Below, in pieces: positions 6,121-60,010 of a stretch of DNA of 64,000 nucleotides. The DNA is taken from the sequence record NC_042013.1; one strand, given 5' to 3'. Each line of letters begins with the position of its first letter. Within the stretch, counting starts at the first letter, position 1. Position numbers and translations under genes: made by a program. The notes beneath the pieces are model-generated. The model was not told the DNA's origin. It saw only the letters and a program-made list of their open reading frames with translations, and searched no databases.

Positions 6121-6150
6121 AAGGTGATGATAGTTTCCCATCATCACCTT
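6121..6150 (-). terminator. Intrinsic terminator after tRNA
   Basis: Perfect 10-bp stem AAGGTGATGA/TCATCACCTT followed by a T-run on the minus strand. Confidence 0.8.
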
Positions 6151-6155
6151 GTTTA

Positions 6156-30940: not shown

Positions 30941-30947
30941 TAATATA

Positions 30948-30983
30948 AACCTCCGTTAGTATACAAGTATTTATACGGAAGTT
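30948..30983 (-). promoter_or_regulatory. TATAAATA late promoter within RBS-sequestering hairpin (tail tube)
   Basis: AACTTCCGT pairs with ACGGAGGTT (SD GGAGG); TATAAATA at 30968-30975. Confidence 0.8.
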
Positions 30984-31021
30984 GTAAATAATATTAATAA
31001 AATGATAATGAGACTAAACTT

Positions 31022-31270
31022 ATGAAACAACGTAAAATGTCTGATGCCCATAGGAAAGCGATCAGTAATTCCAAAAAAGGGAAACCTCTTGGAAAGGTAA
31101 TTTCGCGTCAAACAAAATACAAATTAGTTTCTCCTACAGGAAAAATATCATTTGTAGATTCGTATGATTTACCTAGATTTTTGAAGAATAATGGTCTTTC
31201 ATATCCAACTATGATGAGACACGTAAAATCAGAAAAAGCTCATCGGGGATGGCTAATCACCAGAATATAA
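31022..31270 (+). CDS. NUMOD3-type DNA-binding mini-protein (homing endonuclease remnant)
   Basis: RKMSDAHRKAISNSKKGK; no nuclease motif. Confidence 0.6.
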   Translation: MKQRKMSDAHRKAISNSKKGKPLGKVISRQTKYKLVSPTGKISFVDSYDLPRFLKNNGLSYPTMMRHVKSEKAHRGWLITRI

Positions 31271-31594
31271 ACGTCCCTCAACTATCATAAATTGTAATCC
31301 ATCTAATCTTTTAAGAAAATTATGTATACTCGTTTCATATACACAAACCGCAGTAATAGTATTATATGCTCTATAAGTATAATTATGGCTTACTGCAACT
31401 GAAAGCCACCTGTTATCAAAATGATAGCTAGAATCATCTACAAACACAAAACGACGCATATAGGAGCTATCTAAACGCGATATAGATATTCGATTTATGT
31501 TTCTTGTAATTTTATAATTTATAGGTTCTACCGGTAGTATATCACTAAGATTCACTACCGGAGAGCCATCATTTGAATAAATCGAATATATCAT
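31253..31594 (-). CDS. Hypothetical protein
   Basis: ATGA overlap with TROVE gene stop. Confidence 0.55.
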   Translation of the reverse strand: MIYSIYSNDGSPVVNLSDILPVEPINYKITRNINRISISRLDSSYMRRFVFVDDSSYHFDNRWLSVAVSHNYTYRAYNTITAVCVYETSIHNFLKRLDGLQFMIVEGRLYSGD

Positions 31595-33255
31595 TTTCTA
31601 AAGAAATCTGCAATTGCTGCTGGCGTATCAGGCGAAAATCCAACAAAGTCCATCATACCGCTATCTTTTGGATTAGCAATAGTAATTTCATTTGATACCA
31701 TTCCAACGACTGCAAGTTTTGTATCAACTTTAAGTCTATCCCGCATGCGATACAATGCTGCATCCGCTCTCATTGCCGTTTGATATGTTTCATTATCTGT
31801 ATACACAGAAATGTTTTCAAATGGAATTTCTTTGTCAATAGCATAAAGCATTGGCAAAGAACAATCGGTTCCACCAAATCTAAAACCAGCAATATAACGC
31901 ATTACCTGCGAAATCGTCATAGAAGGATCGATTTCCATTTCAATAATGGAACCCTTATTATGAGAATATCTCGAGGTCGTCTGGCTATAAGTCCATACGT
32001 CTTTTTTAGAATTCTTATCGTCATTGACTCCGACCGAGAACCCAATAAAAGATACATCTTTTTCAACATTGGCATTTACGAGAGCCAACGCCGCCGAAGC
32101 CGTTCTTGCGTCAAGGCCAATGATACCACCAACCTCGTGAGTAGTCATTGATCCAGAAACGTCTAATGCAATCAAACTTTTTTTACCAACCGGCGTTACA
32201 TTTGCAAATGTTTTGTAAAAACCCGTATTCAATGCTTCAGTTACTTCCTTAATAGGAACCCATTCACTTGATCCACGAGAAGACTTCCCGGCAACATAGG
32301 TCATATATGCGGCAAGCATTTTGATAGGATGAATCCTCGACTTATGCAAATATTCTTGATCGTTCAACCGCTCAATGACTTTATACGTAGCCTCTTTACT
32401 AACACCCAATAGACCAACACGAGTCATAGTTGCAATGTTTCTAACCATCGCCTCAAGGGGCATAGATTCCAACAAGGCTTCCCATACAGCGGGGTTTGTA
32501 AGATGTTCGGTAGGAATTGCCTCTCGTGGCAACTTAACGTCATTGCCGTTAATAAGCGATAGCAAACGCGGCAAATCTGCCGTTTTTGCTTGTTCGTATG
32601 CCGTTATAATATTTGGCAAATAATCGGTCAAATCTGCACGGTTGAGAACCTTCTTATCAACTTTGCCCTTAACATATGGAGTAGTACCAGAAACGGCATC
32701 CATTCCACCTACAATCCACCTGAAAATAGATTCAGTAGTTGCATTACCGGCGACAGGATGTGAAAGACGCAATGCATCTTTGTGTTTCCATCCATTACGT
32801 TCGCGATATTTAACAACCTGATATGCTAGTTGTTCAGGATTTTTAGTAGTATACCATTTTGCAACAGCTTTTCGGAGTGCTGAACCCCAACCACGATAAC
32901 CTTTAACAATTTCAAGAAATGTAAAAAGGTGAGTTGCAGTACGCGCAACTTCGTTAAGCTTCGATAAAGCATATGACCTGATCTTGTTATCATCTTGGCT
33001 TGCAGCAATAGCAAGAGCGAACAGACAATAGTCATTTTTAGACCCAAGACCAAGGGTCGAAACCTCAACGACACGGTCGATGGTTTTAACGTGATCTAGC
33101 TTAAGCAATTGAATGAGGTTGTCTGTATTCAACTTTGTCAATTCTGCACCGGTAGAATACATTGTATTATTCTCGGTTCCAAGAATCAAAAAGCGATCCA
33201 ATTTATCAAAATCATCAACAGCGTATACGTGCTTTTTATCAACCATTACCATCAC
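31591..33255 (-). CDS. rsr: Ro60/TROVE-vWA RNA-binding protein
   Basis: LDRFLILGTE, YRERNGWKHKDALRLSHP, MVRNIATMTR, SRIHP, MIDAS IALDVSGSM, GGTDCSLPM, YTDNET. Confidence 0.92.
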   Translation of the reverse strand: MMVMVDKKHVYAVDDFDKLDRFLILGTENNTMYSTGAELTKLNTDNLIQLLKLDHVKTIDRVVEVSTLGLGSKNDYCLFALAIAASQDDNKIRSYALSKLNEVARTATHLFTFLEIVKGYRGWGSALRKAVAKWYTTKNPEQLAYQVVKYRERNGWKHKDALRLSHPVAGNATTESIFRWIVGGMDAVSGTTPYVKGKVDKKVLNRADLTDYLPNIITAYEQAKTADLPRLLSLINGNDVKLPREAIPTEHLTNPAVWEALLESMPLEAMVRNIATMTRVGLLGVSKEATYKVIERLNDQEYLHKSRIHPIKMLAAYMTYVAGKSSRGSSEWVPIKEVTEALNTGFYKTFANVTPVGKKSLIALDVSGSMTTHEVGGIIGLDARTASAALALVNANVEKDVSFIGFSVGVNDDKNSKKDVWTYSQTTSRYSHNKGSIIEMEIDPSMTISQVMRYIAGFRFGGTDCSLPMLYAIDKEIPFENISVYTDNETYQTAMRADAALYRMRDRLKVDTKLAVVGMVSNEITIANPKDSGMMDFVGFSPDTPAAIADFFRK

Positions 33256-34124: not shown

Positions 34125-37100
34125 TTAAGAATTAGAAACCTGTGTTGCATTACCATTATCGATATTGAACAACGTATTCAAGTCTGTTCCATATGGCGCA
34201 ATACGCAATGGAATATAAATGAATTCAACAGCCTTAGTTGGCGAGATAATCGCGTCAAGCCATAGCTCGTTACGATTAACACGATCTGGCGTATTGTTGG
34301 ACTCGTCACAAATAGTTAAGAAGTCATACAACGCTCTAAGAGCCACAAGGTTAGTCATGTAACGATCTGTTGAAATCTTGAATGCATCACGTGTATGCTT
34401 ATCATTAGGTTCAAACAAGAATGGCTTAGCAAGCGCGTCAAGATCATAACGCATCTTGTTAATAAGTCTTGCAACGTTAACACGGTCCATTGCCGTTGCG
34501 GTTGCTGAACGGGTCTTCTGTCCGAAAAGAGCCAAGCCGCGATTAGGCAAGAATGCAATAGGGTTAATCTTGTTAAGATACAACGTATCACGCTGACCTT
34601 CATTCAAGAATACTGCCTTGAATTCACCTTCTTCAGTAATGTAACCAACGTTGGTAGCATTTGTTACGAGACCACGCTGATAACCAGCAGGAGCAAACCA
34701 AGGATATGCAATGCTATCGTTATAAGCATACGTTCTAAGTGCCATAGTGGATGGTGGAACAACTACTTCAAAGCCGTCTACGTTAGTAGAATAACCCCAA
34801 GGATAGTAAACACCAACATATGGGCTGTTAGTAGTGATACCTGTTTCGCTATTTGATGCTGCACCAGAAAGTTCAACATTTGCCCAAGTCTGGATTGCTG
34901 TTGAATTTGGCTTAAGGCGCGCTGGAGTATCACCAATAATGAACGCAGTTTCTTTACGGTCGGTATTAAGCGTTACCATTTCATCGATAAGCTCAACATA
35001 ACCGGGTGTTGCCATTAGGTTGTAATAAATTGATTCCGCACGAATGTCTTCATTACTTGAAATAGTTGCACCCAATGCTCTAACGATAACCGCACGCTGT
35101 GCCTTACGGCCCATGTTTGGTGAACCGTCATTGGTATTACCAGAGATAGTAACCCAACGGCCTGCTGATGCAACTGGACCAAATGATGAGTAACCAACAT
35201 TGTATCCAGAAATTGTGAAGTTCGTATTAGGATCGAATTCACCCGCGAAATAGTTTGGACGCCATTCCTTTACGTTGTTTGTTGAATAACGTGTGTTAAA
35301 CAACAATACGCCATCTGGATACAAACGTGGGTCTGGAGCATCTGGATCAAGATAATCAGATACAAGCATATCCTCGATTGCAGTTGACGCGTCCTTAGTG
35401 CCTGCACTTGCTGCACGGGCATCTTCAAACACGATACCAAAAGGTGTAACGCTATCGCTATTATCAATCAAGCTCCAAGAACGAGTAGCTTCCTGATAAC
35501 GATAAAGTTTAGGATAGTTTTCTGTATCGCTGGTGTCAATCCATAGATCGTTCTGAACCAATGGGTTACCATTAGTCTGCGTCGTAGGTGCAGAACCTGC
35601 CAAAAGAACACCGGTAGCATTAGTGTTAAAGTTTTCAGGACGATTGCGGTATCCAACCCACTGGTCGCCATCTGCAACCATGATGTCAACGCGGAAATCA
35701 TCATTAAACCACATAGTACCTTCAACCGGAGAAGTTGACGGTGCAACTGCGCCATATGCATATACTAAATCTTCCCAAACGGAACCTGACCAACGGCGAA
35801 TTGCAAAATTAGCAATAGGTGGAACCGCACCAGTTTTGTTATAGCGAACATAAAGCGTTCCAATAGTCTTACTACCGCCAAACAATACGTCTGCTGCAAC
35901 ATCGGTTGCAAGAAGTGGTGCGGGGATAGTAATCCAAGCGCCGGAAACAGCATTGTAAAGCTTTACAGACCATTTAGAACCGTTATTGTATTCGGTTGTG
36001 TTGATCCATACTTCACCCGCTGCAACTACCTGACGACCTAAATCGTCTGTTCTACGTGGAACCTGATAGTTAGGTGCAAAACGAAGTAATTTACCAAATT
36101 TAGTAGTAATACCAATTACGGTAGCCGCTACTGAATCAGAATCGAGAACAATGTCGCCACCGAGTTTGTTAACGAGAACAACGCTACCTGCGTCAAGGAA
36201 TGCTTCAATTGCATTGCTTGTTGCATTATTTGCTGCGCCGAGTTCAGAATTGATAAAGCTAACAACGTCTGCTGGAGTAAGATCATTACCAAAAACAATG
36301 TTTACCTCAGTTGAAGGATCATTAGAAACATTAATCGTTAAAGACTGCCCATTAAGAGCAGGAACGGTTGTTGATCCAAGATTACCACCGATAGAACGAG
36401 TTGGAGTTGCTTTAGTCCAGATATCTGAACCAATTTCAAGCCAAGTCGCAATAGCGAGTGGGTCGTTAATAGTAGCAACACCACCGGGAACAATCTTCTG
36501 GTACATTGTATTACCATTGGTAATAGACACTGCAAATGATCCAGAAATACCGATAGTTGTTCTTGGAACGGTTTCTACAATTTCATTGCCATTAAGACCG
36601 ATAGATGAAAGAATTGCTGGCGTTGATCCAGTAAAATCAAATTCGTATCCTGCATTAGCAAGAAGAATTAGTCGGCTCATTCCTGAAAGCTGCAAGATGT
36701 TAGCCGTTACGCCAGTAACAGATGTTTGAATTGCAGTAACGAGTGATGCCAACGTATCCGTTGTAGCAATAGCAATAGTAGTACCGTTAATAACCAAATT
36801 ACCGGGTGTTGTTGTTACAGGCGCAGATGCATTTGGATATTCATTTGACGCAATAACGCGTGCCTGATGATCAGCAAGGCTTGTTAATACAGCAGGAGTC
36901 TGCGGAGTCCACGCGCTGTTAGGATATGTGCTTGCAACTCCTGAGAAAATACCAAACTTGGTATTTGCGGTATCAAACCAATATGTACCTGCAAGAGGTT
37001 CACCGCGTGGTTCGGAATCAGAAGGGAACAATTGTGCATAGTCTACTGAACCACGAATAACGTATGCGCGATTTGCCATACCAAGATACTGATATGTTGC

Positions 37101-37385
37101 GTGAAGACCATATTCGTTAAGTTCGTAACCGTGACGTGATGTACCATTTCGCTGATAGAATACAGGATTACCAAATGTTTGAACAAGTTCACGCTGTGAC
37201 GTGATGATGTACAATTTGTTTGCATTTTCAGGCAATGTGCCTTCAGCAATGTCAACACCATTCGGTTGAATCTTATATTCGTGAGTACCTAAAATAATCA
37301 GCGGAACAGTACCCTCGCCAGCCGTTGCGTAACCGCTTTCGTCAATCACGCTGATGTCTACGCCGGGAGAATTCAAAGTAGCCAT
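34125..37385 (-). CDS. gp18: Tail sheath protein (1086 aa, large insertions)
   Basis: SPGVDISVIDES, ITSQRELVQTFGNP, YPWFAPAGYQRG, RDTLYLNKINPI, FGQKT, DRVNVARL, FLFEPND, KAVEFIYIP. Confidence 0.93.
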   Translation of the reverse strand: MATLNSPGVDISVIDESGYATAGEGTVPLIILGTHEYKIQPNGVDIAEGTLPENANKLYIITSQRELVQTFGNPVFYQRNGTSRHGYELNEYGLHATYQYLGMANRAYVIRGSVDYAQLFPSDSEPRGEPLAGTYWFDTANTKFGIFSGVASTYPNSAWTPQTPAVLTSLADHQARVIASNEYPNASAPVTTTPGNLVINGTTIAIATTDTLASLVTAIQTSVTGVTANILQLSGMSRLILLANAGYEFDFTGSTPAILSSIGLNGNEIVETVPRTTIGISGSFAVSITNGNTMYQKIVPGGVATINDPLAIATWLEIGSDIWTKATPTRSIGGNLGSTTVPALNGQSLTINVSNDPSTEVNIVFGNDLTPADVVSFINSELGAANNATSNAIEAFLDAGSVVLVNKLGGDIVLDSDSVAATVIGITTKFGKLLRFAPNYQVPRRTDDLGRQVVAAGEVWINTTEYNNGSKWSVKLYNAVSGAWITIPAPLLATDVAADVLFGGSKTIGTLYVRYNKTGAVPPIANFAIRRWSGSVWEDLVYAYGAVAPSTSPVEGTMWFNDDFRVDIMVADGDQWVGYRNRPENFNTNATGVLLAGSAPTTQTNGNPLVQNDLWIDTSDTENYPKLYRYQEATRSWSLIDNSDSVTPFGIVFEDARAASAGTKDASTAIEDMLVSDYLDPDAPDPRLYPDGVLLFNTRYSTNNVKEWRPNYFAGEFDPNTNFTISGYNVGYSSFGPVASAGRWVTISGNTNDGSPNMGRKAQRAVIVRALGATISSNEDIRAESIYYNLMATPGYVELIDEMVTLNTDRKETAFIIGDTPARLKPNSTAIQTWANVELSGAASNSETGITTNSPYVGVYYPWGYSTNVDGFEVVVPPSTMALRTYAYNDSIAYPWFAPAGYQRGLVTNATNVGYITEEGEFKAVFLNEGQRDTLYLNKINPIAFLPNRGLALFGQKTRSATATAMDRVNVARLINKMRYDLDALAKPFLFEPNDKHTRDAFKISTDRYMTNLVALRALYDFLTICDESNNTPDRVNRNELWLDAIISPTKAVEFIYIPLRIAPYGTDLNTLFNIDNGNATQVSNS

Positions 37386-37386
37386 T

Positions 37387-37464
37387 ATATAACCCCATGT
37401 TTAAGATAAATTCGTATTGGGCAAAGAAAGCCCGTTTCAAGTATTTATCTCAGAGGGGTTATAT
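37387..37464 (-). promoter_or_regulatory. Late promoter within nested RBS-sequestering structure (tail sheath)
   Basis: ATATAACCCC/GGGGTTATAT, AGATAAAT/ATTTATCT, GGGC/GCCC; GATAAATA at 37442-37449. Confidence 0.75.
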
Positions 37465-37485
37465 GAGGCGGTTTTTTACCAATAA

Positions 37486-38043
37486 TTAGAAATCAAACAT
37501 AGATATTAAAACTTTTTCAAGCTGCTCGTCAGAAACATCTCTACTTCCTACACCTGCCCATACACCAGTAGGAGCAGGAACTTTTGTTATTTTCTGCCAA
37601 CAAGAACTGGTATACATGTACCAATTATCATCATTTAGATTATAAAGAAACATCGAATTACATAGTTCATCGAAAATATCAATGAACATTTGAACTGCCC
37701 ACGCAGTGCCACCTTCAACCGTTCCTTTTTCAACATTTAATTTGGCGATTGCATATAACTTATCGCTACCGTTAATTTGATACCAATTCCGGCGAAGGAG
37801 ATTATTAACGTGTTCGCTTTTTGATGGATATGACCTTTTTAATGTTTTATTAGCTTTTTGCAAAGCTTCCTCAGACATAGACAATTCATCATCGCTTAAA
37901 ATCACAACTCTTGAGCAAGAAGTCTTATGACCTTTGAACGAATAGTTAATAACGTGATGACCTATTCCAAATGCATATGCATTCCAGAAAGTATCAGCGC
38001 CTGTTGCCCCACCAGAAATACATACACCATTTTCACTATTCAT
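37486..38043 (-). CDS. SLOG-like nucleotide-binding protein
   Basis: CISGGATGAD, LLRRNWYQI, VEGGTAWAV. Confidence 0.55.
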   Translation of the reverse strand: MNSENGVCISGGATGADTFWNAYAFGIGHHVINYSFKGHKTSCSRVVILSDDELSMSEEALQKANKTLKRSYPSKSEHVNNLLRRNWYQINGSDKLYAIAKLNVEKGTVEGGTAWAVQMFIDIFDELCNSMFLYNLNDDNWYMYTSSCWQKITKVPAPTGVWAGVGSRDVSDEQLEKVLISMFDF

Positions 38044-38684
38044 AAAAGCAACTCCAACTTAGAATACAACGAATCTATTGTATCATCATTTGTCAACACT
38101 TCGTCAAAATCGTATCCAATCCACGACCATTCAGACGGATGAACACCAGTAGAAAGCATTATCTTATTTGCATTGTAATCACCGGTATTCGCTAACAATG
38201 CGGTTTCATACCAATCAGGTTCTTCGCCTTTTTTAATGCGAATGATTTTTCCATTCTTTTTGCGAATAGCATTTAATTCATTAAAAAATCTACCGTCAGT
38301 TATCACCACATCACTATTGTAATTTTCAATTCGGCGTTCTAATGATTTTATCCAAAGGCCATCATCAAAATGTTTTCTAACTAAATCTGTCCCGAATAAT
38401 TGCATTGCCGCTCTCGGCGTAAACCGTTCGGACACAAACCTATATGGAGAATTAATCCAATCTAACTCATTTTCCCACCATATATCAGGTTCGTTTCTCC
38501 ACGCTCTTGATGAAGGTGTGTTACCTTCTATCATTTCTCTATCCCATCCAAAAATTGCACATACACAATCTTTAACGGGAGAAGCAAAAGAATCTTGCTT
38601 ATAATCGTGGTAATGTGTAAAAAAATCCCCTGCTGTATTTTTTCCGCTACCAATAAACCCAACAATTCCAACAATATTTTTCAT
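38040..38684 (-). CDS. gp1: Deoxynucleoside monophosphate kinase
   Basis: GFIGSGKNT, SFASPVKD, TPRAAMQLFGTD, VVITDGRFFNE, HPSE. Confidence 0.9.
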   Translation of the reverse strand: MKNIVGIVGFIGSGKNTAGDFFTHYHDYKQDSFASPVKDCVCAIFGWDREMIEGNTPSSRAWRNEPDIWWENELDWINSPYRFVSERFTPRAAMQLFGTDLVRKHFDDGLWIKSLERRIENYNSDVVITDGRFFNELNAIRKKNGKIIRIKKGEEPDWYETALLANTGDYNANKIMLSTGVHPSEWSWIGYDFDEVLTNDDTIDSLYSKLELLL

Positions 38685-38752
38685 ATCGGTATTCTCTATA
38701 TTTTTAACTATATACAGAGAATACCAAAATCAAGGTTAATTATTCAATATTT

Positions 38753-40426
38753 TTATCTCCACTTGTTAACAATAGGATAGCGTCTATCCTTATTAAACAA
38801 ATGATTGGAGATTCGTGTGCCAATTGCTGTTTGTCGACGTTTGCCTTCAGCGCTGTAAATGAGATTGTTGATACGAACAACAACGTCCCTATCATTTCCC
38901 AATGCAACAACCTCATCAACCGATTTATTTCGATCAATTAGATTACGAAGGATTTCGTCCAACACCGGATAAGGAGGTAGCGAATCCTCATCCTTTTGAT
39001 CTGGCCTAAGTTCAGCCGATGGTGGTTTGCTGATAATAGATTCAGGAATAATTTCAATATCACCTTTACCCAAAAATCCAAGACCATCAACCTCGGTTTG
39101 TGTAATAGAATTCCTCCATCGTGCTACCTCAAACAAATATGATTTGTAATAATCTTGAATAGGATTATATGCACCACAAGAATCACCATAAAGAGTAAAA
39201 TACCCAACGCTCGTTTCAGAACGATTTCCTGTAGTAAGAACCATAGACCCTTCTTGGTTACTAATACTCATTAGAATTACACCGCGAGCACGCGCTTGAA
39301 TATTTTCATCAGCAGTCCCGGTCAAACTGGTTTTTAGTAGTTCAACGTTTTCTGCCTCATACGTTTCGTCATAAACACGTGTCCAACGATATGCTGCTCG
39401 TAGTGATTCTACAACCGGCTCGATATCAATCATCCTGAATGGTGCACAAAGACGCTTTGCCCCCTCAAGGGCGTCCGATTTAGAATGCTCAGATGAGTAT
39501 CCAGATGGGAGAGAAACCAATGTCACATTTTCCGGCCCAAAAGCGTCAACCGCCATTGCAGCAACAATACCGGAATCTACGCCACCAGAATAACCAAGAA
39601 CTGCTTTTTTAACACCTTGTTTGTGAAAAAAGTCTCGTAGGCCGAGAACGGATGCTTGGTAATTAGTTTGACGATCATCAACATCAGGGAATGGGTTGTT
39701 ATTGTCAAAATCTAAAACAAAAGAACCCTCGGCAAAAAGAGGCGTATGATCACGAACGCAACCATCATACAAAAATGATCCCCCGTCAAAAACGATATGA
39801 TCTTGACCTCCTACAATTGTCGCATACACAATTGGAATTCCGGTTTCATCAAATCTTTTTTTACAGACGTCCACTCTAACAGAAACTTTATCCTGCTCAT
39901 ATGGTGATCCATTGATTGAAACAATCAATGTCGCCCCTTGGCGTTTGTGTTCTGCAATTACGTCAGGATGCCACGTATCCTCACATACCACAATGCCTAC
40001 TTTTTCATTACCAATAGAAATAGTTCGAATGTCTTTCAGTTCGCCGCGCTTAAACGTCCTAATTTCATCAAATACGTAACCATTCGCCCGCATATGCTTT
40101 CTATTCATAACCAAAATAGACCCATTATGTGAGGCAACACCTACGTTGTATGCACCAACTTGGGCTTTTTCAATAGAACCAAAAATAATGGGTGTTTTCA
40201 AATGTGCGGTTTCGCGAACAAAACGCGCCGTTTCTTTCTCGGCAGCGTCTACAAAATCTTGCCTAAAAAGCAAATCTTCTGGAAGATAACCAACGGTGGC
40301 GCATTCACCAAATACGATCAGGTCAGACTTACCGTCAGCAGATGCCGCCAATGAAATCATGTTGTTTACGTTATTAACAATATCACCAACTACAGGATTA
40401 AAGTTGATCGTCGTTATCTTCATCAT
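38753..40426 (-). CDS. nadE: Glutamine-dependent NAD+ synthetase
   Basis: Nitrilase triad E(FGEC)-K(RKHM)-C(VCEDTW); SGGVDS, ENIQARARG, TGNRSE, PSAELRPDQKDED. Confidence 0.93.
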   Translation of the reverse strand: MMKITTINFNPVVGDIVNNVNNMISLAASADGKSDLIVFGECATVGYLPEDLLFRQDFVDAAEKETARFVRETAHLKTPIIFGSIEKAQVGAYNVGVASHNGSILVMNRKHMRANGYVFDEIRTFKRGELKDIRTISIGNEKVGIVVCEDTWHPDVIAEHKRQGATLIVSINGSPYEQDKVSVRVDVCKKRFDETGIPIVYATIVGGQDHIVFDGGSFLYDGCVRDHTPLFAEGSFVLDFDNNNPFPDVDDRQTNYQASVLGLRDFFHKQGVKKAVLGYSGGVDSGIVAAMAVDAFGPENVTLVSLPSGYSSEHSKSDALEGAKRLCAPFRMIDIEPVVESLRAAYRWTRVYDETYEAENVELLKTSLTGTADENIQARARGVILMSISNQEGSMVLTTGNRSETSVGYFTLYGDSCGAYNPIQDYYKSYLFEVARWRNSITQTEVDGLGFLGKGDIEIIPESIISKPPSAELRPDQKDEDSLPPYPVLDEILRNLIDRNKSVDEVVALGNDRDVVVRINNLIYSAEGKRRQTAIGTRISNHLFNKDRRYPIVNKWR

Positions 40427-40853
40427 TACGTCCTTCCATTAACACGTCCATTAAGGCGATATCCTCAATACCTAGAGCTTTTATATCATCAATATTAAGT
40501 TTGCGCAATGCGTGGCTTTTTCGTTTTATTAACATTTCATCAACATAAGTGTCGATAGGGTCAATCGTAATCGTTAATTTCACTTCGCCATAGTAAATAG
40601 GCGTGAATTTAAGACTATGAGAAGCCAAGCTATCTCTGACCACCCGCTCCTTTTTCAAAACCTCACTCTCAGTAATAGTTGTTGCCTCATTAACGCTTTC
40701 AACAACACGCGCTGAGTAATACGACACAGCTAATGGGCATAAAAATTTTCCATCTTTTCTTGGAAGAAAATCAACATCGACGTGATCTACGTTTAACTTG
40801 TAGAGTTCGTCTTCGTCCAATAAAATATATAAGATTTTTTTACTTACTTCCAT
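40398..40853 (-). CDS. Hypothetical protein with C-terminal ALRKLNIDDIKALG tag
   Basis: Overlapping run of four genes. Confidence 0.7.
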   Translation of the reverse strand: MEVSKKILYILLDEDELYKLNVDHVDVDFLPRKDGKFLCPLAVSYYSARVVESVNEATTITESEVLKKERVVRDSLASHSLKFTPIYYGEVKLTITIDPIDTYVDEMLIKRKSHALRKLNIDDIKALGIEDIALMDVLMEGRNDEDNDDQL

Positions 40854-41316
40854 TTTTTGACAACTCCCTTGCTAATTTAAGATCGTCTATCCCAAGTATT
40901 GAACATTCAGTTATAGTCAAACCATCTAATAGCATATTACGCATTGGCTCGTGAATTTGATGAGAAATATCTACATAATCATTCGGGCGGTCATGAAACC
41001 ACGTTACATATTGCAACATAATTTTTTCTACCTCAAATGATCGATTAATTCTCCGAGAAATTTTCAAAAAAACTTCAGGGCTGTCAAATTTTGTATAACG
41101 TCCAAACCCCGGATATAATAAACATTTAACATCACCACCAGCGGTAAGTATCGGAAATAATGTTATCATTTCCTCACCGTTTTCCTCAAAACGATATAGC
41201 TTACGACCAGTATCTGATATTAATTGTGTGTCATCACCTAGATTTAGATGCTTTGTATCTTCAGGCTTCACATTAATAATGTAAATATTTTCGGAATATT
41301 CTTTATAACGTCTCAT
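40840..41316 (-). CDS. Hypothetical protein with C-terminal LDGLTITECSILG tag
   Basis: ATGA overlap. Confidence 0.7.
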   Translation of the reverse strand: MRRYKEYSENIYIINVKPEDTKHLNLGDDTQLISDTGRKLYRFEENGEEMITLFPILTAGGDVKCLLYPGFGRYTKFDSPEVFLKISRRINRSFEVEKIMLQYVTWFHDRPNDYVDISHQIHEPMRNMLLDGLTITECSILGIDDLKLARELSKNGSK

Positions 41317-41780
41317 TTTTTACTCAATTCTCTGGCTAGTTTCAAATCCTCAAGTCCAAGTAACTTACTATCGTATATCGTCAAACCGTCAATAATTGTG
41401 TTTTTTCGATAATCATCAATATCTCCATATGCATCATCAACAGAAATATTAAAATTAAAAAAGCCAACCCCTATTTCAAAGTCTTCGTTTCGAAGGTGAC
41501 TTTTTATTAACCTATGTGCGGATGTAACATATTCAGAAAGTTCTTCGTTATTAATTTTTTCAGATACAGATGAATCATTCCAACTATGGCTTACATAAAC
41601 CCGTGTTTCGGAGGTATCAGGTTTCAAAAAAATTATGTAAAATTTTTCTGTACCAATCATAGTACTCAAATGATTGGCTTGTTGTTTTGTAATGGCCTCG
41701 ATATACTTTTCTGGAATCTTAGCATAAATGTATTTCTTTCGATGGGTGATTTTCATGTTAGTTGTCTCCAGAAATAGCAT
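41313..41780 (-). CDS. Hypothetical protein with C-terminal IDGLTIYDSKLLG tag
   Basis: Overlapping run. Confidence 0.7.
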   Translation of the reverse strand: MLFLETTNMKITHRKKYIYAKIPEKYIEAITKQQANHLSTMIGTEKFYIIFLKPDTSETRVYVSHSWNDSSVSEKINNEELSEYVTSAHRLIKSHLRNEDFEIGVGFFNFNISVDDAYGDIDDYRKNTIIDGLTIYDSKLLGLEDLKLARELSKK

Positions 41781-42252
41781 ATTTCAACTTATGACTAACA
41801 ATTCCGAGTAGCTCACATTCTTCGACCGTCAATTTTGAAACGGCGTGACGAATTGTTTCTTCCTCAATGGTGTCAGTAATAACCGTAATTTTTGGGGTAT
41901 ATTCTATCCACATTAATTCTACTTTATACGGTTTTGTATAAGGTACGTACTCATCTTCTTTTTCAAATGAAATATTTTTTTCAATGAAGTCAGTTATTTC
42001 AACTTTCATTCTACCCAATTCTTCGTCGGTAAAATCTTCGTGTAGGTAGCAAACCTCGGGGGATTCACTCAATAAAAATGAATCTTCATTAACTTTAATA
42101 AAGCAAATATATTCTGTGTTATCACTAGTCATATATAAATTAAAATCGTCAAATGGCTCGTGTTCCCAACATTCCCCTGCGAAACTCGCTCCAACCAACA
42201 ATGACACGCCAAAACATTTGAAATTAATAGGGTTATGACTATATTTTTCCAT
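41758..42252 (-). CDS. Hypothetical protein with C-terminal VSKLTVEECELLG tag
   Basis: First gene of run, behind a sigma70 promoter. Confidence 0.7.
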   Translation of the reverse strand: MEKYSHNPINFKCFGVSLLVGASFAGECWEHEPFDDFNLYMTSDNTEYICFIKVNEDSFLLSESPEVCYLHEDFTDEELGRMKVEITDFIEKNISFEKEDEYVPYTKPYKVELMWIEYTPKITVITDTIEEETIRHAVSKLTVEECELLGIVSHKLKYAISGDN

Positions 42253-42255
42253 GAA

Positions 42256-42310
42256 AAAACTCCGTACCTTTGGAATACGGAGTTTTATAATATTGTACGG
42301 GTTATGTCAA
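42256..42310 (-). promoter_or_regulatory. Sigma70 promoter overlapping terminator/RBS hairpin
   Basis: TTGACA-N17-TAAAAC; stem AAAACTCCGTA/TACGGAGTTTT carries GGAG SD. Confidence 0.65.
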
Positions 42311-42319
42311 GTAGGTAGA

Positions 42320-43693
42320 TTATAGGAAAATTCTCCAGTATCCCGGTGGGTATTTTTTGTTAACAGCATATTCCCAAACACCCTTTACAAACTTGTATTG
42401 TATACCAGACTGCAAGTTTAGAATGAATTGAACGTTTTCTTCCTCTGATGCATCAAATATCTTAACCCATTTTGTTCCATCAAACACAATGATATCATTT
42501 GCGTCTGCGGTCAAATCTCCCCAAATGTTACTCGGACGGATTTCACCAACAATGATATATCTATCACCCAAGGTCGGCAATGGTAGACCAGTTCCGAGAT
42601 ATGTTTTATTTGGATCGATGACTCCTTTAACATTAGGTAGGGTATTAGAAGGCAATGACATAGGATCAACTGCCCACGAAATTTTGTTAGGTTCATTTGG
42701 ATCAAGTTCAAACGTACCAACGATATCCGTTTCAAAATCCTCAATAAATTCTGATGTTTTAAGTCGTATTTGTGAAATACCCGGTCGTAACGTACCATAA
42801 TCTTCAATTAAAGCATTCCAGTCATGCAACAAACCGCCGTCAGTTTTCAAGCTACCATATGCACCAAGAAGCGTAATTTTACTATTATCAACAGAGATAA
42901 GGTGATTGCCGGGGGTTACAATGATTCTGCTTAATAAATCAGATTCAGACCAATACATTGCCGCCGTCTGTGGATCACTGTTTTCTCTAACAAGAGCCTC
43001 ATCCATATGATTAATATTAGTGACAATTTGCTCAATAATATTATATTTCATAATCTTAGCAGGCGGATTAATCCAAATAGGAACATTGAATGTTAGAACA
43101 GATGAATCGACGGTTGTTGTAGTATCACCGATAGGGATTGATCTTGAAGACCAAAGGGTGTCTGTTAATTCAACAATAGTCAATGATGACCAATCAACCG
43201 CGTTTGTATTGGATTGAATGTCGATAGATGGATTGAAAAGAACCAACAACTGTTCCATAATCTGATGCTTTTGATTATCGTTTGTTGTCCATATTTCAAC
43301 TTTCATAGTCATGTCGTATGCAACTGGCATAAAACGTTTGGCAGAATATGTAGCACCGCGTGTTTTAAGATACGAATTATTCATCGCATCATATTCACGT
43401 TCCACTATATCAACCTGATCGATATGATTAGGGGTCTGACGCCTATTTGGACTTACTGACAAATTATCAATATAGGCCGTTATTTGGGGGAACGACACTG
43501 CGGTGTTAGACGAGTTGTTACTTAAGATAGCACCTACAAGTGCATCTTTCAAAGCAAATTTTGCCGGTATCTTTTTCAAAACCGGATTACCGTCAGAATC
43601 GTTTCTAACAGAATAATGGATACTTTGAAAAATACGCAAGAATTGCAACATATAGTTACGTATTTGACCATCATAAAAATAATCTAATGCCAT
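42320..43693 (-). CDS. gp15: Tail terminator / sheath stabiliser with C-terminal extension
   Basis: YFYDGQIRNYMLQF, MPVAYDMTMKVEIWT, QIMEQLLVLFNPS, LTFNVPIWI. Confidence 0.8.
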   Translation of the reverse strand: MALDYFYDGQIRNYMLQFLRIFQSIHYSVRNDSDGNPVLKKIPAKFALKDALVGAILSNNSSNTAVSFPQITAYIDNLSVSPNRRQTPNHIDQVDIVEREYDAMNNSYLKTRGATYSAKRFMPVAYDMTMKVEIWTTNDNQKHQIMEQLLVLFNPSIDIQSNTNAVDWSSLTIVELTDTLWSSRSIPIGDTTTTVDSSVLTFNVPIWINPPAKIMKYNIIEQIVTNINHMDEALVRENSDPQTAAMYWSESDLLSRIIVTPGNHLISVDNSKITLLGAYGSLKTDGGLLHDWNALIEDYGTLRPGISQIRLKTSEFIEDFETDIVGTFELDPNEPNKISWAVDPMSLPSNTLPNVKGVIDPNKTYLGTGLPLPTLGDRYIIVGEIRPSNIWGDLTADANDIIVFDGTKWVKIFDASEEENVQFILNLQSGIQYKFVKGVWEYAVNKKYPPGYWRIFL

Positions 43694-53996: not shown

Positions 53997-54911
53997 TCAA
54001 CCAATTATTTCGTTTTTATACCAATCCACTAAATGTTTGAAGCCATTACAAGAATTTGTCAAATCTTTAACGTCGCGCAAATGTTCGCTAAGACATTTCC
54101 CAAAATATTCACAGCCATTACAAAAATCATTTTTAGAAACGCGTTCTTTTTCGATAAGTGTCCAATTCTCATATTCTGAAAATGTTTCCATTTCCAAGAA
54201 ATATTCGTTATCGTTTTCATCAAATTCCAATACACCAAATTTGCCGGTCGGTGTTATATATACGTGGTCATCTGAAAAGCTATGCGCAAGTCCGTCAATA
54301 ACGTCCTCGATTAAGAATTCATTTACAAATTCAAAATTTTTAGGAATTTCGCTAACTATCCATTTTTTAACGAATTCTTCAAAATCAGAAAAAGAAACGT
54401 CATCAACATTTGCTTGATTGGTACTATAAGGCTTTATTTCAACTGCTTTCAACCTGCTAAACAAATTCAATTCGTTTATCATATTGTCAACATCGAATGT
54501 TATTAATTCTTTTCCTGCAAGCATAAGAATGGAAAAATCTTTATCAAGCATAAGCATGTTGTTACGAACGCTTGCGCTTGCTTGGCGTGCAGTGAAATCG
54601 TAGCTAACAGAAAGATCGACATCATCATCAAGAAAGCCGGGATGAATTCGAGATAGATTTGTAATAACGTTTATAACGCCGCTATAATGCTTGCGGATAA
54701 CGTTCTTCATATCGTACCATTGATGTTCTTTAAGCAACCCAACCTCGCCACCGTATAGGTCTATGGCCGTTATATGGCCTATCTCAGCAAGACGTTTGTC
54801 CAACAAATCAAAATCTATAACTTTAGTATCGGCCAATTGCTTTTCTGTTAGATAGCAAAAGCTGCACCTGAAATTACACCAGTAAAGGGGGTTTAATGAG
54901 ACTTTGGTCAT
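53997..54911 (-). CDS. Radical SAM protein 4 (partial SPASM)
   Basis: CNFRCSFC; YGGEVG; C-terminal CNGCEYFGKC...C. Confidence 0.9.
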   Translation of the reverse strand: MTKVSLNPLYWCNFRCSFCYLTEKQLADTKVIDFDLLDKRLAEIGHITAIDLYGGEVGLLKEHQWYDMKNVIRKHYSGVINVITNLSRIHPGFLDDDVDLSVSYDFTARQASASVRNNMLMLDKDFSILMLAGKELITFDVDNMINELNLFSRLKAVEIKPYSTNQANVDDVSFSDFEEFVKKWIVSEIPKNFEFVNEFLIEDVIDGLAHSFSDDHVYITPTGKFGVLEFDENDNEYFLEMETFSEYENWTLIEKERVSKNDFCNGCEYFGKCLSEHLRDVKDLTNSCNGFKHLVDWYKNEIIG

Positions 54912-56014
54912 AGTCCATTCAATTCCAAAATGTCTGATGCGAGTGTTTTCATTAGTTTACAATGATCCTCAACTACGTTTGCGGCTTTTAAATCTTTTAC
55001 GGTTTTTCGGCAACCATTACAAATTGCAAACATTGGGCATCCGTAACATTCGTGTTTCATAGAATCGAGTTCAAAGTCTTCCTGTAGGGGTTTAAAGAAT
55101 GCACCATTCATTTCAGCGTCAAAGTCGATAGCCTTGTCCATATCGTCGCCAAATGCACCGCAACTATAGTACCCACCCTCTGGCTGAAGAGTTCTAATAC
55201 CCTCATCACAAGTTCTGTTCTGCGGGCAAATGGTGGCAAAACCACCAAGTCTCTTTCTCATCTGTTTGGTGTTAAATTCCCAATCAGATAGACCTTGCTT
55301 TGCAATATCCACGTATATTTTGTAAATCTTTGATAATTGATATGGTTTACCTTCTTGACCCATTTTATGACCAGTGCGCGGGTCGACAACAACCGGACCT
55401 GAGGCCATTGCATAGTTCAACTTACATTCAACCCCAATTTTTGTACCGTCTTCAAGAATTCTTGCGGGTTGATCATTACTCATTTTCTTAGCAAGGATCA
55501 CATTGTCAATTGCTAAATGTTCATTCTCATCTGTAATAACACTAATAAAGTCAGGGCGATATCCAACATGTTCAAGCATCGCATCCGATACTTTCCACAG
55601 GTCATCTTCGGTGAACAAACTAAGGTCACCTTTAACTCTCCCCGGCCCATAATTAAACGAGGTGTTAACGCCAACACGCCTATTTTTAAACAAATCTTTC
55701 CATTTATTAGGGTTCTTATAAAAAGGCCACAAATTTGATGTAAAGCTAATACTGGTGTCGTCGTATCCATTTGTATCCAAATGGTCAATAATCTTCCAAT
55801 AATATTCAGGTTGGACCATTAATGGATCACCACCATTAACGATAATTGTCTTGGTATCGGGGAATCGCTCAAGGAATCTAAAAATGTCGTTGATATCAAG
55901 TGTTGCCGCATTATTTGCAGATAATTTCGTGCTACTACAAAACGTGCATTTGAAATTGCATGCAACCGTGATTTTTGTTATCAAATCCACTTTTTCAATC
56001 CTCGTATGTTTCAA
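54908..56014 (-). CDS. Radical SAM/SPASM protein 3
   Basis: CNFKCTFC; NGGDPL; C...C...GGYYSC, CYGCPMFAICNGC...C. Confidence 0.92.
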   Translation of the reverse strand: MKHTRIEKVDLITKITVACNFKCTFCSSTKLSANNAATLDINDIFRFLERFPDTKTIIVNGGDPLMVQPEYYWKIIDHLDTNGYDDTSISFTSNLWPFYKNPNKWKDLFKNRRVGVNTSFNYGPGRVKGDLSLFTEDDLWKVSDAMLEHVGYRPDFISVITDENEHLAIDNVILAKKMSNDQPARILEDGTKIGVECKLNYAMASGPVVVDPRTGHKMGQEGKPYQLSKIYKIYVDIAKQGLSDWEFNTKQMRKRLGGFATICPQNRTCDEGIRTLQPEGGYYSCGAFGDDMDKAIDFDAEMNGAFFKPLQEDFELDSMKHECYGCPMFAICNGCRKTVKDLKAANVVEDHCKLMKTLASDILELNGL

Positions 56015-56897
56015 TTTTCTTTAGTATTTTAGCATTTTTTATAGAACCTAACAAGCCCTTTACCGCGTCACTTGATGAGGTGAATGCTATTCTTTTATTT
56101 GCATTGGAATTTATCAATCGTCCAACGGGTATCAAACCGATGGTTTTAATAGCGTGATCATATCTAAATTTTGGATTAAGATAGTCAATTTCTTTTTTAT
56201 ATTTTATTAGATTTTCAACTACCCTACCATGAATTGCGGTATGCTCATCAAAAAATGGTATCTCGAAACCTGCACTTAAAAATGATGGCAGACCAAACTC
56301 GTCTTTCACAATTGCCGTTTTTATGTCATCGATATTAGAATCTGATAAGAATGAATACGGGCGCTTTTCGTACATAGGCGTTGCATAGATATGCCCGTAC
56401 TGAATATCGTGAGTTATATAATCAATCCAGCTTTCTTCGAATTCAACAATGGTTTTATGGTTAAAACGAATTGTACCAAATACTGATTCGTTTGATCTTA
56501 CTTTTTTATCTTTACCATTATGAATCCAGAAACCGATATGTTTAAGTTCCTCTATTAACGGCAGTAAATTCATATCCGCTATAGGTGCGCTAGTAAATGT
56601 ATTCATAACGTGTGACAAAACAGCATTAATAACAGCGGGTGTTATTTTTTTATAATTAGTTCCCAATGCTTTGTGTGTTATGTTTAGATTATGTAATTGT
56701 CCACGAATATTGTTCCATATACGTTCGGCGTCCGAATCACAATCACAAAAATAAGTATCCACTGGATTTGATATTTCCATATCAAATCGCGTAATTGCGG
56801 CTTGCCATGCTTTGGCTGGAGGCGTATCCAAAAATTCCCAATCAAGCCTCTCGGACATATTAAGCCCGCAATCAAACATTGCGCTAATTTGCGTCAT
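55995..56897 (-). CDS. Hypothetical protein in rSAM operon
   Basis: Overlaps/abuts both neighbours. Confidence 0.75.
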   Translation of the reverse strand: MTQISAMFDCGLNMSERLDWEFLDTPPAKAWQAAITRFDMEISNPVDTYFCDCDSDAERIWNNIRGQLHNLNITHKALGTNYKKITPAVINAVLSHVMNTFTSAPIADMNLLPLIEELKHIGFWIHNGKDKKVRSNESVFGTIRFNHKTIVEFEESWIDYITHDIQYGHIYATPMYEKRPYSFLSDSNIDDIKTAIVKDEFGLPSFLSAGFEIPFFDEHTAIHGRVVENLIKYKKEIDYLNPKFRYDHAIKTIGLIPVGRLINSNANKRIAFTSSSDAVKGLLGSIKNAKILKKIETYED

Positions 56898-56898
56898 A

Positions 56899-57237
56899 TC
56901 ACAATTCCTTAAAATATTCGGTGCTTAGCTCGAGCAATTCTTCATCGGAGAGAACAGTGTCAAACATATGATACTTAATTCTGTTGGCGTACTGTATTAG
57001 AATAGTCGAAAGATCAACAGACGTTTTTGCATATTCGGTGTCTATAGTAAGACCGTCTGTTACAAAAATATGTATATGATAAAATTGAATATTGGGTTTT
57101 CTTTTTATCCAAATATACGTGTTTGATTTACTTGAATACAAAAACGAAACGTTATCGTCGGGATAAGATGTTTTAAATCCTATGCGTTCTGCTTTTTGTT
57201 CCAATGATCTTACTGTCGAATTATCATAGTCGTGCAT
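56899..57237 (-). CDS. Hypothetical protein in rSAM operon
   Basis: Overlaps upstream rSAM gene. Confidence 0.65.
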   Translation of the reverse strand: MHDYDNSTVRSLEQKAERIGFKTSYPDDNVSFLYSSKSNTYIWIKRKPNIQFYHIHIFVTDGLTIDTEYAKTSVDLSTILIQYANRIKYHMFDTVLSDEELLELSTEYFKEL

Positions 57238-58327
57238 TTACGATATCTATCTCCGCGTGAACTGGCTTCATCCAGCAATCGTTCATAGTTCTTGACGGGC
57301 CATTGAAATGTTGTTGTAGAAAACAACCAAGACCACATCTGTCGAAATATTTACAGTTTGGACAATCCATCTTCGTTACGAACTTAGATTCAATTTCACC
57401 TGCGGTTTCTGGCGCTTGTTCTTTGTGCGATTGATTAAGTAAAATAGTACAACGTCCTGCTGTTGAATCTGGCATAATAGTATACGTACTTTGGCAAGAC
57501 ATTGCATTGTAATGATTTCCCATCCATTCTCGCACGGGGCTTACATTTGGATAGTTGTTGATCAAATAAACGAACATATCTTTCAATTGATGATCTTTTG
57601 GCGCATTCAAATCAAAATTTTTCTCTGGAGTATAGTAATCAAAAAACACATCAAAGTTTTCGTAAATATAATCGAAATACTTAACGTCTCCATTTAAAAA
57701 CTTTTCAATATTTGGCTTAGTAAGAATTACATTAACCGTTCCGATATACTCTTTATATATTTCAAGATTTCGTCTGAATACTTCCAACGTTTCTTTGTTA
57801 AATCTTGAATGAGGATCAAATGACGTTCCAATAGTCGCGGTTATACCCTCGAGTTTCAAATCGTTCATAAATTTTATAATTCGATCTGTTTTCTCGTGAA
57901 CAAGATTGCTAATGAAACCAAACTTAATAGTTTCATTATTTTCTATTGCCCAATGGTAGATTCTTCTGGTCAATACCAGATAACGTTCCATTATACTATC
58001 ATCAAAAATGTCTTGGAATATTTCACCGCCCATTATGTTAACGGTAAAAGTTTCTTTTCTCATTTTTTTAAGAAGAGTAATAGCATTAACAACGGTGTCA
58101 AACTTATCCTCAATGGTATCAAATCCAAACATACTATCGTGATCTTGATTGCAAAACTTACAAGTAAGATTGCAACTTTCGAAAAGAGTAAGAATTATTT
58201 CGCCATTTGTCGAACGTTTCTTTTTCAACACTGTTTCGGCAAAGGATACTTCTTTTTGTGTCTTTTCGGGTAAAGAATTATAAAGAGTTATGGACCCTTT
58301 GCCAAAAACATATTCACTCATTTTCAA
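57224..58327 (-). CDS. Radical SAM/SPASM protein 2
   Basis: CNLTCKFC; MGGEIF; SCQ...GRC, CPNCKYFDRCGLGC...C. Confidence 0.92.
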   Translation of the reverse strand: MKMSEYVFGKGSITLYNSLPEKTQKEVSFAETVLKKKRSTNGEIILTLFESCNLTCKFCNQDHDSMFGFDTIEDKFDTVVNAITLLKKMRKETFTVNIMGGEIFQDIFDDSIMERYLVLTRRIYHWAIENNETIKFGFISNLVHEKTDRIIKFMNDLKLEGITATIGTSFDPHSRFNKETLEVFRRNLEIYKEYIGTVNVILTKPNIEKFLNGDVKYFDYIYENFDVFFDYYTPEKNFDLNAPKDHQLKDMFVYLINNYPNVSPVREWMGNHYNAMSCQSTYTIMPDSTAGRCTILLNQSHKEQAPETAGEIESKFVTKMDCPNCKYFDRCGLGCFLQQHFNGPSRTMNDCWMKPVHAEIDIVNARL

Positions 58328-59117
58328 TTTTTTCCAGAATTACTCTTTGGGCTTCGATCAAATCTTTATCCGCATCTTCAAGGGTGTAATCGCTTGTTCC
58401 GATGTAATCAAATGCGGCAACCAGCGGATTTCCACTTACTACGAAGTAATCATATAAGCATTTCGAACCATACATGAATTCTTCAAACTGTTTTGTAAAA
58501 TAATGGAATTCGACACCGGGGACGGAATAAAAGATTTCCATAAACAAAGTATTTGAAAACAAATGAACAAAATTCGATCCAAATTCATTAGCATTGTCAA
58601 TGTTGTTAACAGTATCTTTTGGATCACCGAAAGCTTCAACATACGCAAGTGATGTGTACATTGCAAAAACAACCATAGAATCCATAAGAACACGATGTTT
58701 GTGAACCAAATGATGGTTCTGTTCTATAAATTCTGCAATTTCTTCTGTTGAAAGATATGGTTTATCGAAACATTTATTATAGGTATCAATACCTTTCGAC
58801 ATACACAACACTGAAGCAAATGCATTACTTAGTACAGGAATAGGCGCAATGGTGCGAGTTTCAATATACTCTTTAAGTAATGTAAATCGTTCCTCTTTTG
58901 ACGTTGCGTCGGTAATTGAAAGATCGCAATCAATCTGCAAATTACCAACGTACGTTAAGAATTTTTTATCTTTGAATAGACTGTTATCATAATCGATTAA
59001 GAAAACGATATCTGGATTTGAAAATTTTTCGCGTAACAAATCAATGTCAATAGGCGCGATAGTCTTTCTAATATCTTCATCTTTAACGCTATAGATATCA
59101 ATCATTTTATTCTCCAA
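58314..59117 (-). CDS. Hypothetical protein in rSAM operon
   Basis: Starts immediately after substrate gene stop. Confidence 0.8.
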   Translation of the reverse strand: MENKMIDIYSVKDEDIRKTIAPIDIDLLREKFSNPDIVFLIDYDNSLFKDKKFLTYVGNLQIDCDLSITDATSKEERFTLLKEYIETRTIAPIPVLSNAFASVLCMSKGIDTYNKCFDKPYLSTEEIAEFIEQNHHLVHKHRVLMDSMVVFAMYTSLAYVEAFGDPKDTVNNIDNANEFGSNFVHLFSNTLFMEIFYSVPGVEFHYFTKQFEEFMYGSKCLYDYFVVSGNPLVAAFDYIGTSDYTLEDADKDLIEAQRVILEKIENE

Positions 59118-60008: not shown

Positions 60009-60010
60009 AT

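Follow-up and report, generated by a model that had tools for sequence, protein, structure and literature searches.

Three phage pathways that rebuild nicotinamide adenine dinucleotide (NAD+) have been validated as counter-defences, and the NAD+ synthetase NadE takes part in none of them. NARP1 (Adps and Namat) and NARP2 (Nampt and Nmnat) were described in a preprint that holds 0 mentions of NadE, and NARP3 (PnuC and NadR), published in 2026, likewise works without this enzyme (PMC13464706). The gene considered here, gp135, encodes a NadE of Agrobacterium phage Atu_ph07, a jumbo myovirus of the genus Polybotosvirus with a genome of 490,380 base pairs (bp) and Agrobacterium tumefaciens C58 as host. 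It was studied within a stretch of 64,000 nucleotides (nt) from record NC_042013.1, hereafter the window, in which a position equals the record coordinate minus 62,000. On the evidence of its domains, its relatives and its gene neighbourhoods in other phages, gp135 is quite probably a genuine NadE that catalyses the last step of a deamidating (Preiss-Handler type) NAD+ salvage module encoded by the phage itself, and what was a lone annotated gene becomes a defined and testable set. If the proposed route works, a deamidating pathway would join the phage repertoire.

NadE-based salvage in jumbo phages has already been described in silico. Gut jumbo phages surveyed in 2024 proved to hold complete salvage or Preiss-Handler gene sets, among them a pncB-nadD-nadE cluster in phages such as Kuafu_71, and a role in counter-defence was suggested there without a test (PMC11662467). 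The jumbo phage PA5oct upregulates the pncA-pncB1-nadE operon of its host (PMC7318152). The original description of Atu_ph07 names NadR, PnuC, Nudix proteins and a nicotinate phosphoribosyltransferase (NAPRTase), and mentions neither NadE nor a pathway; RefSeq already annotates gp135 as 'NAD synthetase'. In the literature searched, no experimental test of a NadE-based phage route or of its anti-defence role was found, and a search for 'NARP4' returned nothing relevant. An earlier sequence-only reading of this DNA, which had correctly set NadE apart from NARP1 and NARP2, proposed an alternative NAD+ restoration route through deamido-NAD; the route itself is backed by the findings below, but its novelty was overstated in view of the 2024 clusters and of a NARP3-like gene pair in the same genome. 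What is added to the earlier description is the PncA-like and Nudix components and a viral-only clade of the synthetase.

The gp135 gene (38753..40426, minus strand; annotated start 40423) encodes 557 amino acids (aa) and carries the two domains expected of a glutamine-dependent NadE, namely an N-terminal CN_hydrolase domain (PF00795, 3e-19) and a C-terminal NAD_synthase domain (PF02540, 1.7e-62). With 557.2 bits it exceeds the curated cut-off of 479 set for NCBIfam NF010588 'NAD+ synthase', and among the structures of the Protein Data Bank (PDB) it comes closest to two-domain enzymes (3n05, 4f4h and 5kha; E about 1e-100). All residues of the glutaminase triad (E41, K110 and C148) are invariant in a 12-sequence alignment with the closest relatives and match the triad sites in 3n05 and 4f4h, and the ATP-pyrophosphatase loop S280-G-G-V-D-S285 (SGGxDS) is invariant in the same alignment. 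The gene is what the sequence-only reading had called it, an intact two-domain glutamine-dependent NAD+ synthetase, predicted from its family to convert nicotinate adenine dinucleotide (NaAD, or deamido-NAD) with ATP and glutamine into NAD+. Compared with a relative whose DNA is 83% identical (L004), the C-terminal half shows nonsynonymous (dN) and synonymous (dS) divergences of 0.029 and about 1.5 (dN/dS about 0.02), a constraint comparable to that on the tail sheath and kinase genes of the same phage. Since positions 37486-40426 match the annotated genes gp133-gp135 of Atu_ph07 with 100% identity and the NadE gene shows this low dN beside a high dS, the three are real genes rather than chance open reading frames (ORFs).

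An exhaustive protein search placed the best matches of gp135 beyond its cluster of more than 90% identity at 45-49% identity, and the three of these that were traced to contigs all sit among phage genes (3/3). In a tree with bacterial NadE, gp135 falls within viral-only clades of 15, 17 and 19 rows with approximate likelihood-ratio (SH-aLRT) supports of 96, 96 and 98; these clades neighbour Alphaproteobacteria and are not nested within the Rhizobiaceae, the family of the host. The clade of gp135 is restricted to jumbo-phage contigs of 150-580 kb. A recent capture of the gene from the host was considered and rejected, the NadE of Rhizobiaceae being about 40% identical and in a separate clade.

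The remaining enzymes of a deamidating route are encoded about 87 kb from NadE in Atu_ph07, by gp236, gp237, gp238 and gp242. The clearest assignment is gp242 as PncB, with 464.6 bits against NF003704 (cut-off 379) and 292.7 against TIGR01514 (cut-off 269.55) and only 121 bits against the PHROG 'Nampt' family; a profile search detected no second NAPRTase-family ORF in the genome. The isochorismatase-family protein gp236 passes the cut-off of PF00857, its top PDB matches are all nicotinamidases, and it aligns with their Asp-Lys-Cys triad and metal ligands; it scores 21.7 against NCBIfam PncA, far under the cut-off of 174, and is here called PncA-like. The nucleotidyltransferase gp237 resembles NadM and the archaeal nicotinamide mononucleotide (NMN) adenylyltransferases (NMNATs) and carries the HxGH and SxTxxR motifs, gp695, farther from NadE, being a second nucleotidyltransferase of the same HIGH type. 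The Nudix protein gp238 retains REx2EE and is accompanied by three further Nudix proteins in the genome. The sequence-only reading had proposed to look for pncA, pncB, nadD, nadM and prs, and this search thus yielded PncA-like, PncB and NadM-type genes and a weak NadD-like match in gp695. No prs appeared among the annotated products, a survey of names only, over positions up to 490,000 of the 490,380-bp record, and the phosphoribosyl pyrophosphate (PRPP) for the route must therefore come from the host. Annotation names and one PncB profile, short of an exhaustive profile scan, likewise gave no Nampt or Namat. The end of the PncB gene is overlapped by gp243 (L002:41064-41723, plus strand), which has no family match; weak paralogues of it occur at scattered sites, including one immediately downstream of the NadR-like gene.

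The grouping of these genes with NadE becomes apparent in related phages. A scan of IMG/VR recovered 58 viral loci with NadE relatives, and linkage was counted in the untruncated ones with a NadE sharing 43% identity or more with gp135 (n=13). Partner profiles were built from Pfam-verified members; tblastn with the Atu_ph07 proteins missed most of the PncA, adenylyltransferase and Nudix neighbours. In 13/13 of these loci NadE has all four partners (PncA-like, PncB, NadM-type and Nudix) on its own strand and no more than 10 kb away, which strongly backs the deamido-NAD route of the sequence-only reading; many viral NadE genes of more remote similarity have PncB as a neighbour too. Three contigs hold NadE in one co-directional cluster with the NAPRTase, isochorismatase, nucleotidyltransferase and Nudix genes. 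Two arrangements recur. Layout A has the order nucleotidyltransferase-Nudix fusion, PncB, PncA and NadE, while layout B runs from a gp15 gene through a gp136-like ORF to NadE, PncB, Nudix, nucleotidyltransferase and PncA; the order Nudix, nucleotidyltransferase and PncA is common to layout B and to gp238-gp237-gp236 of Atu_ph07. The salvage genes form a module in the relatives that is split in Atu_ph07 itself. A single inversion, from the gp142 side to NadE, would give the Atu_ph07 order and part NadE from PncB; this inversion and later rearrangements would have placed NadE beside an unrelated block of kinase, SLOG and sheath genes and left the remaining salvage genes about 87 kb off. Because its clades are viral only and its linkage is conserved, NadE represents an old phage lineage that travels with salvage genes.

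The proposed pathway combines these gene assignments and their linkage with chemistry taken from the enzyme families. PncA deamidates nicotinamide, PncB joins nicotinate and PRPP to give nicotinate mononucleotide (NaMN), an adenylyltransferase of the HIGH type converts NaMN to NaAD, and NadE amidates NaAD at the expense of glutamine and ATP. In Atu_ph07, the PncA-like gp236 would turn nicotinamide into nicotinate, gp242 would form NaMN with PRPP, the NadM-type gp237 (or alternatively gp695 or a host NadD) would form NaAD, and gp135 would complete NAD+ with glutamine and ATP. The Nudix protein gp238 would probably cleave ADP-ribose to AMP and ribose-5-phosphate and so feed PRPP synthesis, a role in ADP-ribose recycling suggested by its family and by the fusion of its counterparts to the adenylyltransferase. 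Since nicotinamide is the entry point and the Nudix protein is of the ADP-ribose type, the module would consume both products of NADase defences. Its likely purpose would be to keep NAD+ available for phage functions such as the NAD-dependent DNA ligase gp282 (L012:16351-18345, minus strand, outside the window), and it plausibly also offsets NAD+-depleting immunity.

Comparison with described systems places the module close to several of them and identical with none. The deamidating salvage of bacteria, exemplified by the pncA-pncB1-nadE operon of Pseudomonas aeruginosa, shares the nicotinamidase, the NAPRTase, the glutamine-dependent NadE and, in the relatives of Atu_ph07, an operon-like arrangement; the phage set differs in the added NadM-type and Nudix genes (fused in layout A), in the viral clade of its own and in the split of about 87 kb in Atu_ph07. 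The 'NAD-jumbo phage' clusters typified by Kuafu_71 are likewise found in jumbo phages, combine NadE with PncB and have been considered a possible counter to NAD+ depletion, but they use nadD, with no mention of pncA or Nudix genes, whereas the clade of Atu_ph07 has NadM-type, Nudix and PncA-like proteins (PMC11662467). NARP2, with Nampt and Nmnat (NadV and NatV of phage KVP40), resembles the Atu_ph07 set in making NAD+ from nicotinamide and PRPP and in pairing a NadM-like adenylyltransferase with a Nudix protein, but follows the amidated route through NMN without NadE or PncA; gp242 of Atu_ph07 scores as a PncB and not as a Nampt. As in NARP1, both ADP-ribose and nicotinamide would be recycled; NARP1 joins ADP-ribose pyrophosphate (ADPR-PP) directly to nicotinamide, and Prs-like or Namat proteins were neither annotated nor detected in Atu_ph07. 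NARP3 has a direct counterpart in the phage, an adjacent pair of PnuC (gp586) and NadR-like (gp587) genes about 320 kb from NadE and outside the window, yet that pathway imports nicotinamide riboside and is independent of NadE. The product of gp586 matches PF04973 and TIGR01528 above their cut-offs, and that of gp587 matches phrog_3462 with 271 bits and contains both the NMNAT part of NadR and the AAA_28 kinase part. Finally, Francisella, with NadE* and NadM, resembles the phages in combining PncB, NadE and NadM with no obvious NadD, but NadE* is a single-domain, ammonia-dependent enzyme, whereas the phage NadE has two domains and is closest to the NadE enzymes that use NaAD.

How far the module is an instrument of counter-defence is less certain than its existence. 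The five-gene set may, as a tentative proposal that we would place short of probable, constitute a fourth phage NAD+ reconstitution pathway, deamidating in character, drawing on nicotinamide and ADP-ribose and protecting jumbo phages against depletion of the Sir2, TIR or DSR type; a more unusual variant of this proposal has the Francisella order, NaMN to NMN to NAD+, with the two-domain NadE serving as an NMN synthetase. If true, it would explain why Atu_ph07, which has been investigated for biocontrol of its plant-pathogenic host, has two independent NAD+ routes. Purely metabolic support, in which the set supplies NAD+ to a very large and slowly replicating phage in the nutrient-poor hosts of soil and water with no specific link to immunity, strikes us as a real possibility rather than the expectation. 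It would suit the confinement of the NadE clade to jumbo-phage contigs of 150-580 kb, the NAD+ consumers encoded by the phage, the placement of NadE among late genes and the behaviour of PA5oct, which raises the equivalent operon of its host during ordinary infection, but it leaves aside the match between the two products of NADase effectors and the module's nicotinamide entry and ADP-ribose-type Nudix protein, as well as the fact that the three other phage NAD+ routes have been experimentally shown to be counter-defences. The two roles are not mutually exclusive. Several findings weigh against a deamidating counter-defence module as proposed here. The salvage genes are dispersed in Atu_ph07, so that co-regulation cannot be assumed; a bacterium of the host genus encodes a NadE of its own, about 40% identical to gp135; no prs was found among the annotated names; NadE may be redundant beside the NARP3-like route of the phage; and NadE lies among late structural genes, a position that could fit metabolic support better than counter-defence. 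The weakest link of the route is the adenylylation of NaMN: gp237 reaches 47 bits against the NadM-type profile, far under the cut-off of 127, and gp695 shows a weak NadD-like match of 23 bits against a cut-off of 112. NadM-type enzymes, moreover, often prefer NMN.

This preference leaves a Francisella-like order as an alternative, in which NadE would act as an NMN synthetase on NaMN, and gp237 or the NadR-like gp587 would then convert NMN to NAD+, bypassing NaAD. The conserved phage set of PncB, NadE and NadM-Nudix with no clear NadD is one that Francisella tularensis reportedly uses, and the adenylyltransferases of Atu_ph07 resemble the NMN-type enzymes 1f9a, 2qjo and NadR. We nevertheless judge this order unlikely, because gp135 is a typical two-domain protein above the NAD+ synthase cut-off that most resembles ordinary NaAD-using enzymes, and its weakest and most distant PDB match is the single-domain 3fiu of Francisella (1.5e-13); the NadD-like match of gp695, weak as it is, also speaks against it, and archaeal-type NMNATs would have to take NaMN as a substrate wherever an organism has no NadD. 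Far less probable still is that NadE, the adjoining deoxynucleoside monophosphate (dNMP) kinase gp134 and the SLOG-superfamily 'GGAxGAD' protein gp133 form one cassette in which the SLOG protein takes part in NAD+ restoration. The sequence-only reading had paired NadE with the SLOG-like protein on the ground that the three genes are co-oriented and tightly packed, and the packing is real: all lie on the minus strand at the positions it had assigned, with a gap of 68 nt between NadE and kinase and an overlap of 4 nt between kinase and SLOG genes, and they are co-oriented and close in near relatives as well. Gene order elsewhere does not bear the pairing out. Among 79 IMG/VR loci with a gp133 homologue (Atu_ph07 excluded; neighbourhoods of 6 kb), NadE or PncB occurs in 0/79, whereas 58/79 have a dNMP kinase within this distance, which in 50/79 is the immediate neighbour in the same orientation, and a tail sheath gene lies within 6 kb in 50/79. 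In layout-B relatives the kinase-SLOG-sheath unit occupies the strand opposite to NadE, some 8 kb upstream of it; in layout-A jumbo contigs the gp133 homologue and NadE are, from contig ranges, more than 200 kb apart; and in a more distant relative (L008) kinase, SLOG and sheath genes follow one another in this order while the gene upstream of them is not NadE. A conserved hairpin, moreover, parts NadE from the kinase gene, whereas kinase and SLOG genes overlap. Some fusions of the gp133 domain, described below, make an NAD- or ADP-ribose-related ligand conceivable, yet synteny has largely refuted the cassette.

In place of the cassette, the neighbourhoods indicate that gp134 lies outside the NAD route as a member of a conserved kinase-SLOG-sheath block, and that the SLOG protein belongs, by the same reasoning, to the kinase gene pair and not to the NAD+ synthetase. 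The kinase (38040..38684, minus strand, 214 aa) is of the T4 gene-1 type, matching PF21448 DNMK, phrog_139 and T4 gp1, with PDB 1DEK as its sole meaningful structure match. The block ends with the tail sheath gene gp132 (34125..37385, minus strand, 1086 aa; phrog_10581, PF17482). Between the two, gp133 (37486..38043, minus strand, 185 aa) is predicted to be translationally coupled to the kinase through the 4-nt overlap. RefSeq labels gp134 'hypothetical' and gp133 'DprA-like DNA recombination-mediator protein'.

The assignment of gp133 to the SLOG superfamily rests on its AlphaFold model, of high confidence (predicted local distance difference test, pLDDT, 94), which aligns with 3imk at a VIA-align Z of 12.4 and whose top 14 structure matches are all SLOG proteins, 3imk being followed by YpsA, LOG, MCP, DprA and others; a Pfam search at E up to 10 gave no match. 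The protein carries SGGATGAD at residues 10-17, and its family of about 250 homologues, mostly on large phage contigs, has SGGAxGAD, LLRRN and GGTAWA as invariants. The DprA/Smf identity given by PHROG and by the RefSeq name was rejected, since there is no PF02481 match and DprA structures reach a Z of only 6.4-6.5, below 3imk and YpsA; a LOG phosphoribohydrolase was rejected as well, the motif being GGTAWA with no conserved Glu at the corresponding position and LOG structures scoring 5.6-6.9. Closest is the cpYpsA or 'molybdenum-cofactor-carrier-like' branch represented by 3imk, with PF12694 as the nearest named family by structure, which shares the Rossmann-like fold, the N-terminal Gly-rich loop and the GGT motif. 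What sets gp133 apart is that it has no Pfam match, no PGGxGTxxE of LOG and none of the extra domains of DprA, and that it has an invariant LLRRN of its own and a conserved pairing with a dNMP kinase.

This pairing suggests a nucleotide ligand, as judged from gene order, and it points work on a widespread family towards nucleotide metabolism or signalling and not towards NAD+ synthesis. Structure searches also found the gp133-type domain fused to NADAR or DUF4326 in other viruses and embedded in multidomain proteins of 1000-1450 aa in crAss-like phages; such SLOG contexts have been linked by Iyer and colleagues to conflicts centred on NAD and ADP-ribose (PMC7824862). The fusions are a lead for a gp133 role in handling nucleotides or ADP-ribose derivatives and are not evidence of cooperation with NadE. 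Some homologues (L008:1114-2031 and members on L087, L094 and L101) are longer by a conserved C-terminal stretch of about 100 aa, modelled as a small beta-barrel (pLDDT 82) with weak Tudor- or SH3-like matches (Z at most 4) and no Pfam match.

The hairpin in the spacer between NadE and kinase genes (38686..38727, minus strand) has a 16-bp stem, a folding energy of -20.1 kcal/mol and a folding z-score of -5.0, ends 4 nt ahead of the kinase start codon and is conserved in the relative L004, to which the spacer is 95% identical while the flanking coding DNA is 83% identical. It marks the boundary between the NadE and kinase units. The spacer at 37386-37485 (minus strand) also folds into a stable hairpin (dG -35.5, z -6.8), so that both spacers flanking the kinase-SLOG pair hold hairpins that reach the ribosome-binding region of the next gene, and both share 95-96% identity with a relative that matches the phage at only 82-88% in coding DNA. 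Such conserved hairpins may serve translational control or RNA processing.

Upstream, NadE is the last of five overlapping ORFs, being preceded by the small ORFs gp139-gp136 (40398..42252, minus strand), which make up one paralogous family; jackhmmer searches connect gp137 with gp138 and recover for gp139 the ORFs that gp136 also recovers. None of the four has a Pfam or PHROG match or a known domain. Ahead of them stands a terminator-like hairpin (42256..42286, minus strand; 13-bp stem followed by UUUUUU; dG -15, z -3.5), which lies between gp139 and gp140, the T4 gp15-like tail sheath stabiliser (42320..43693, minus strand; PF16724). The hairpin and its U-run suggest that gp139-gp136-NadE is transcribed as a unit of its own, apart from the structural genes gp142-gp140. 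Related phages have a single gp136-like copy between gp15 and NadE; jackhmmer found gp136 homologues at the same position in six contigs (L018, L019, L021, L029, L030 and L031), and gp15 lies upstream of NadE in Atu_ph07, in these contigs and in L035. The window contains 6 copies of the T4 late-promoter motif TATAAATA, where 7.6 would be expected, and scans for sigma-70 promoters and terminators gave no excess over shuffles. No RNA sequencing of Atu_ph07 infection was found, relatives appearing only in metagenomic runs; sequencing runs labelled as RNA contain 5-9% of the sampled words.

The NAD and ADP-ribose toolkit of Atu_ph07 is much wider than NadE, since beside the ligase gp282 the phage also encodes, outside the window, a DarG-like Macro protein (gp670; L016:19338-19775, minus strand) and a NADAR protein (gp673; L016:21521-22057, minus strand).

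Within the window, three further observations concern other genes. An apparently unannotated tRNA-like gene at 6159-6280 (minus strand) scores 56.5 bits against the Rfam tRNA model, and its anticodon loop holds a 51-nt insert that falls short of the size of a group I intron; the gene was not called by ARAGORN, adjoins the HNH endonuclease gene gp090 and is accompanied by a terminator-like hairpin at about 6112-6160. Among the tail genes, gp128 (31591-33255, minus strand) encodes a Ro60/TROVE protein with a vWA domain, and the gap free of coding sequences beside it (about 30941-31590, 650 bp) gave no Y RNA or other family in Rfam at E up to 1. Lastly, the eight co-directional genes gp165-gp172 at 54908-61646 (minus strand; record 116908-123646) include three radical S-adenosylmethionine (SAM) proteins interleaved with hypothetical ones, a run that could be a modification or natural-product-like cluster.

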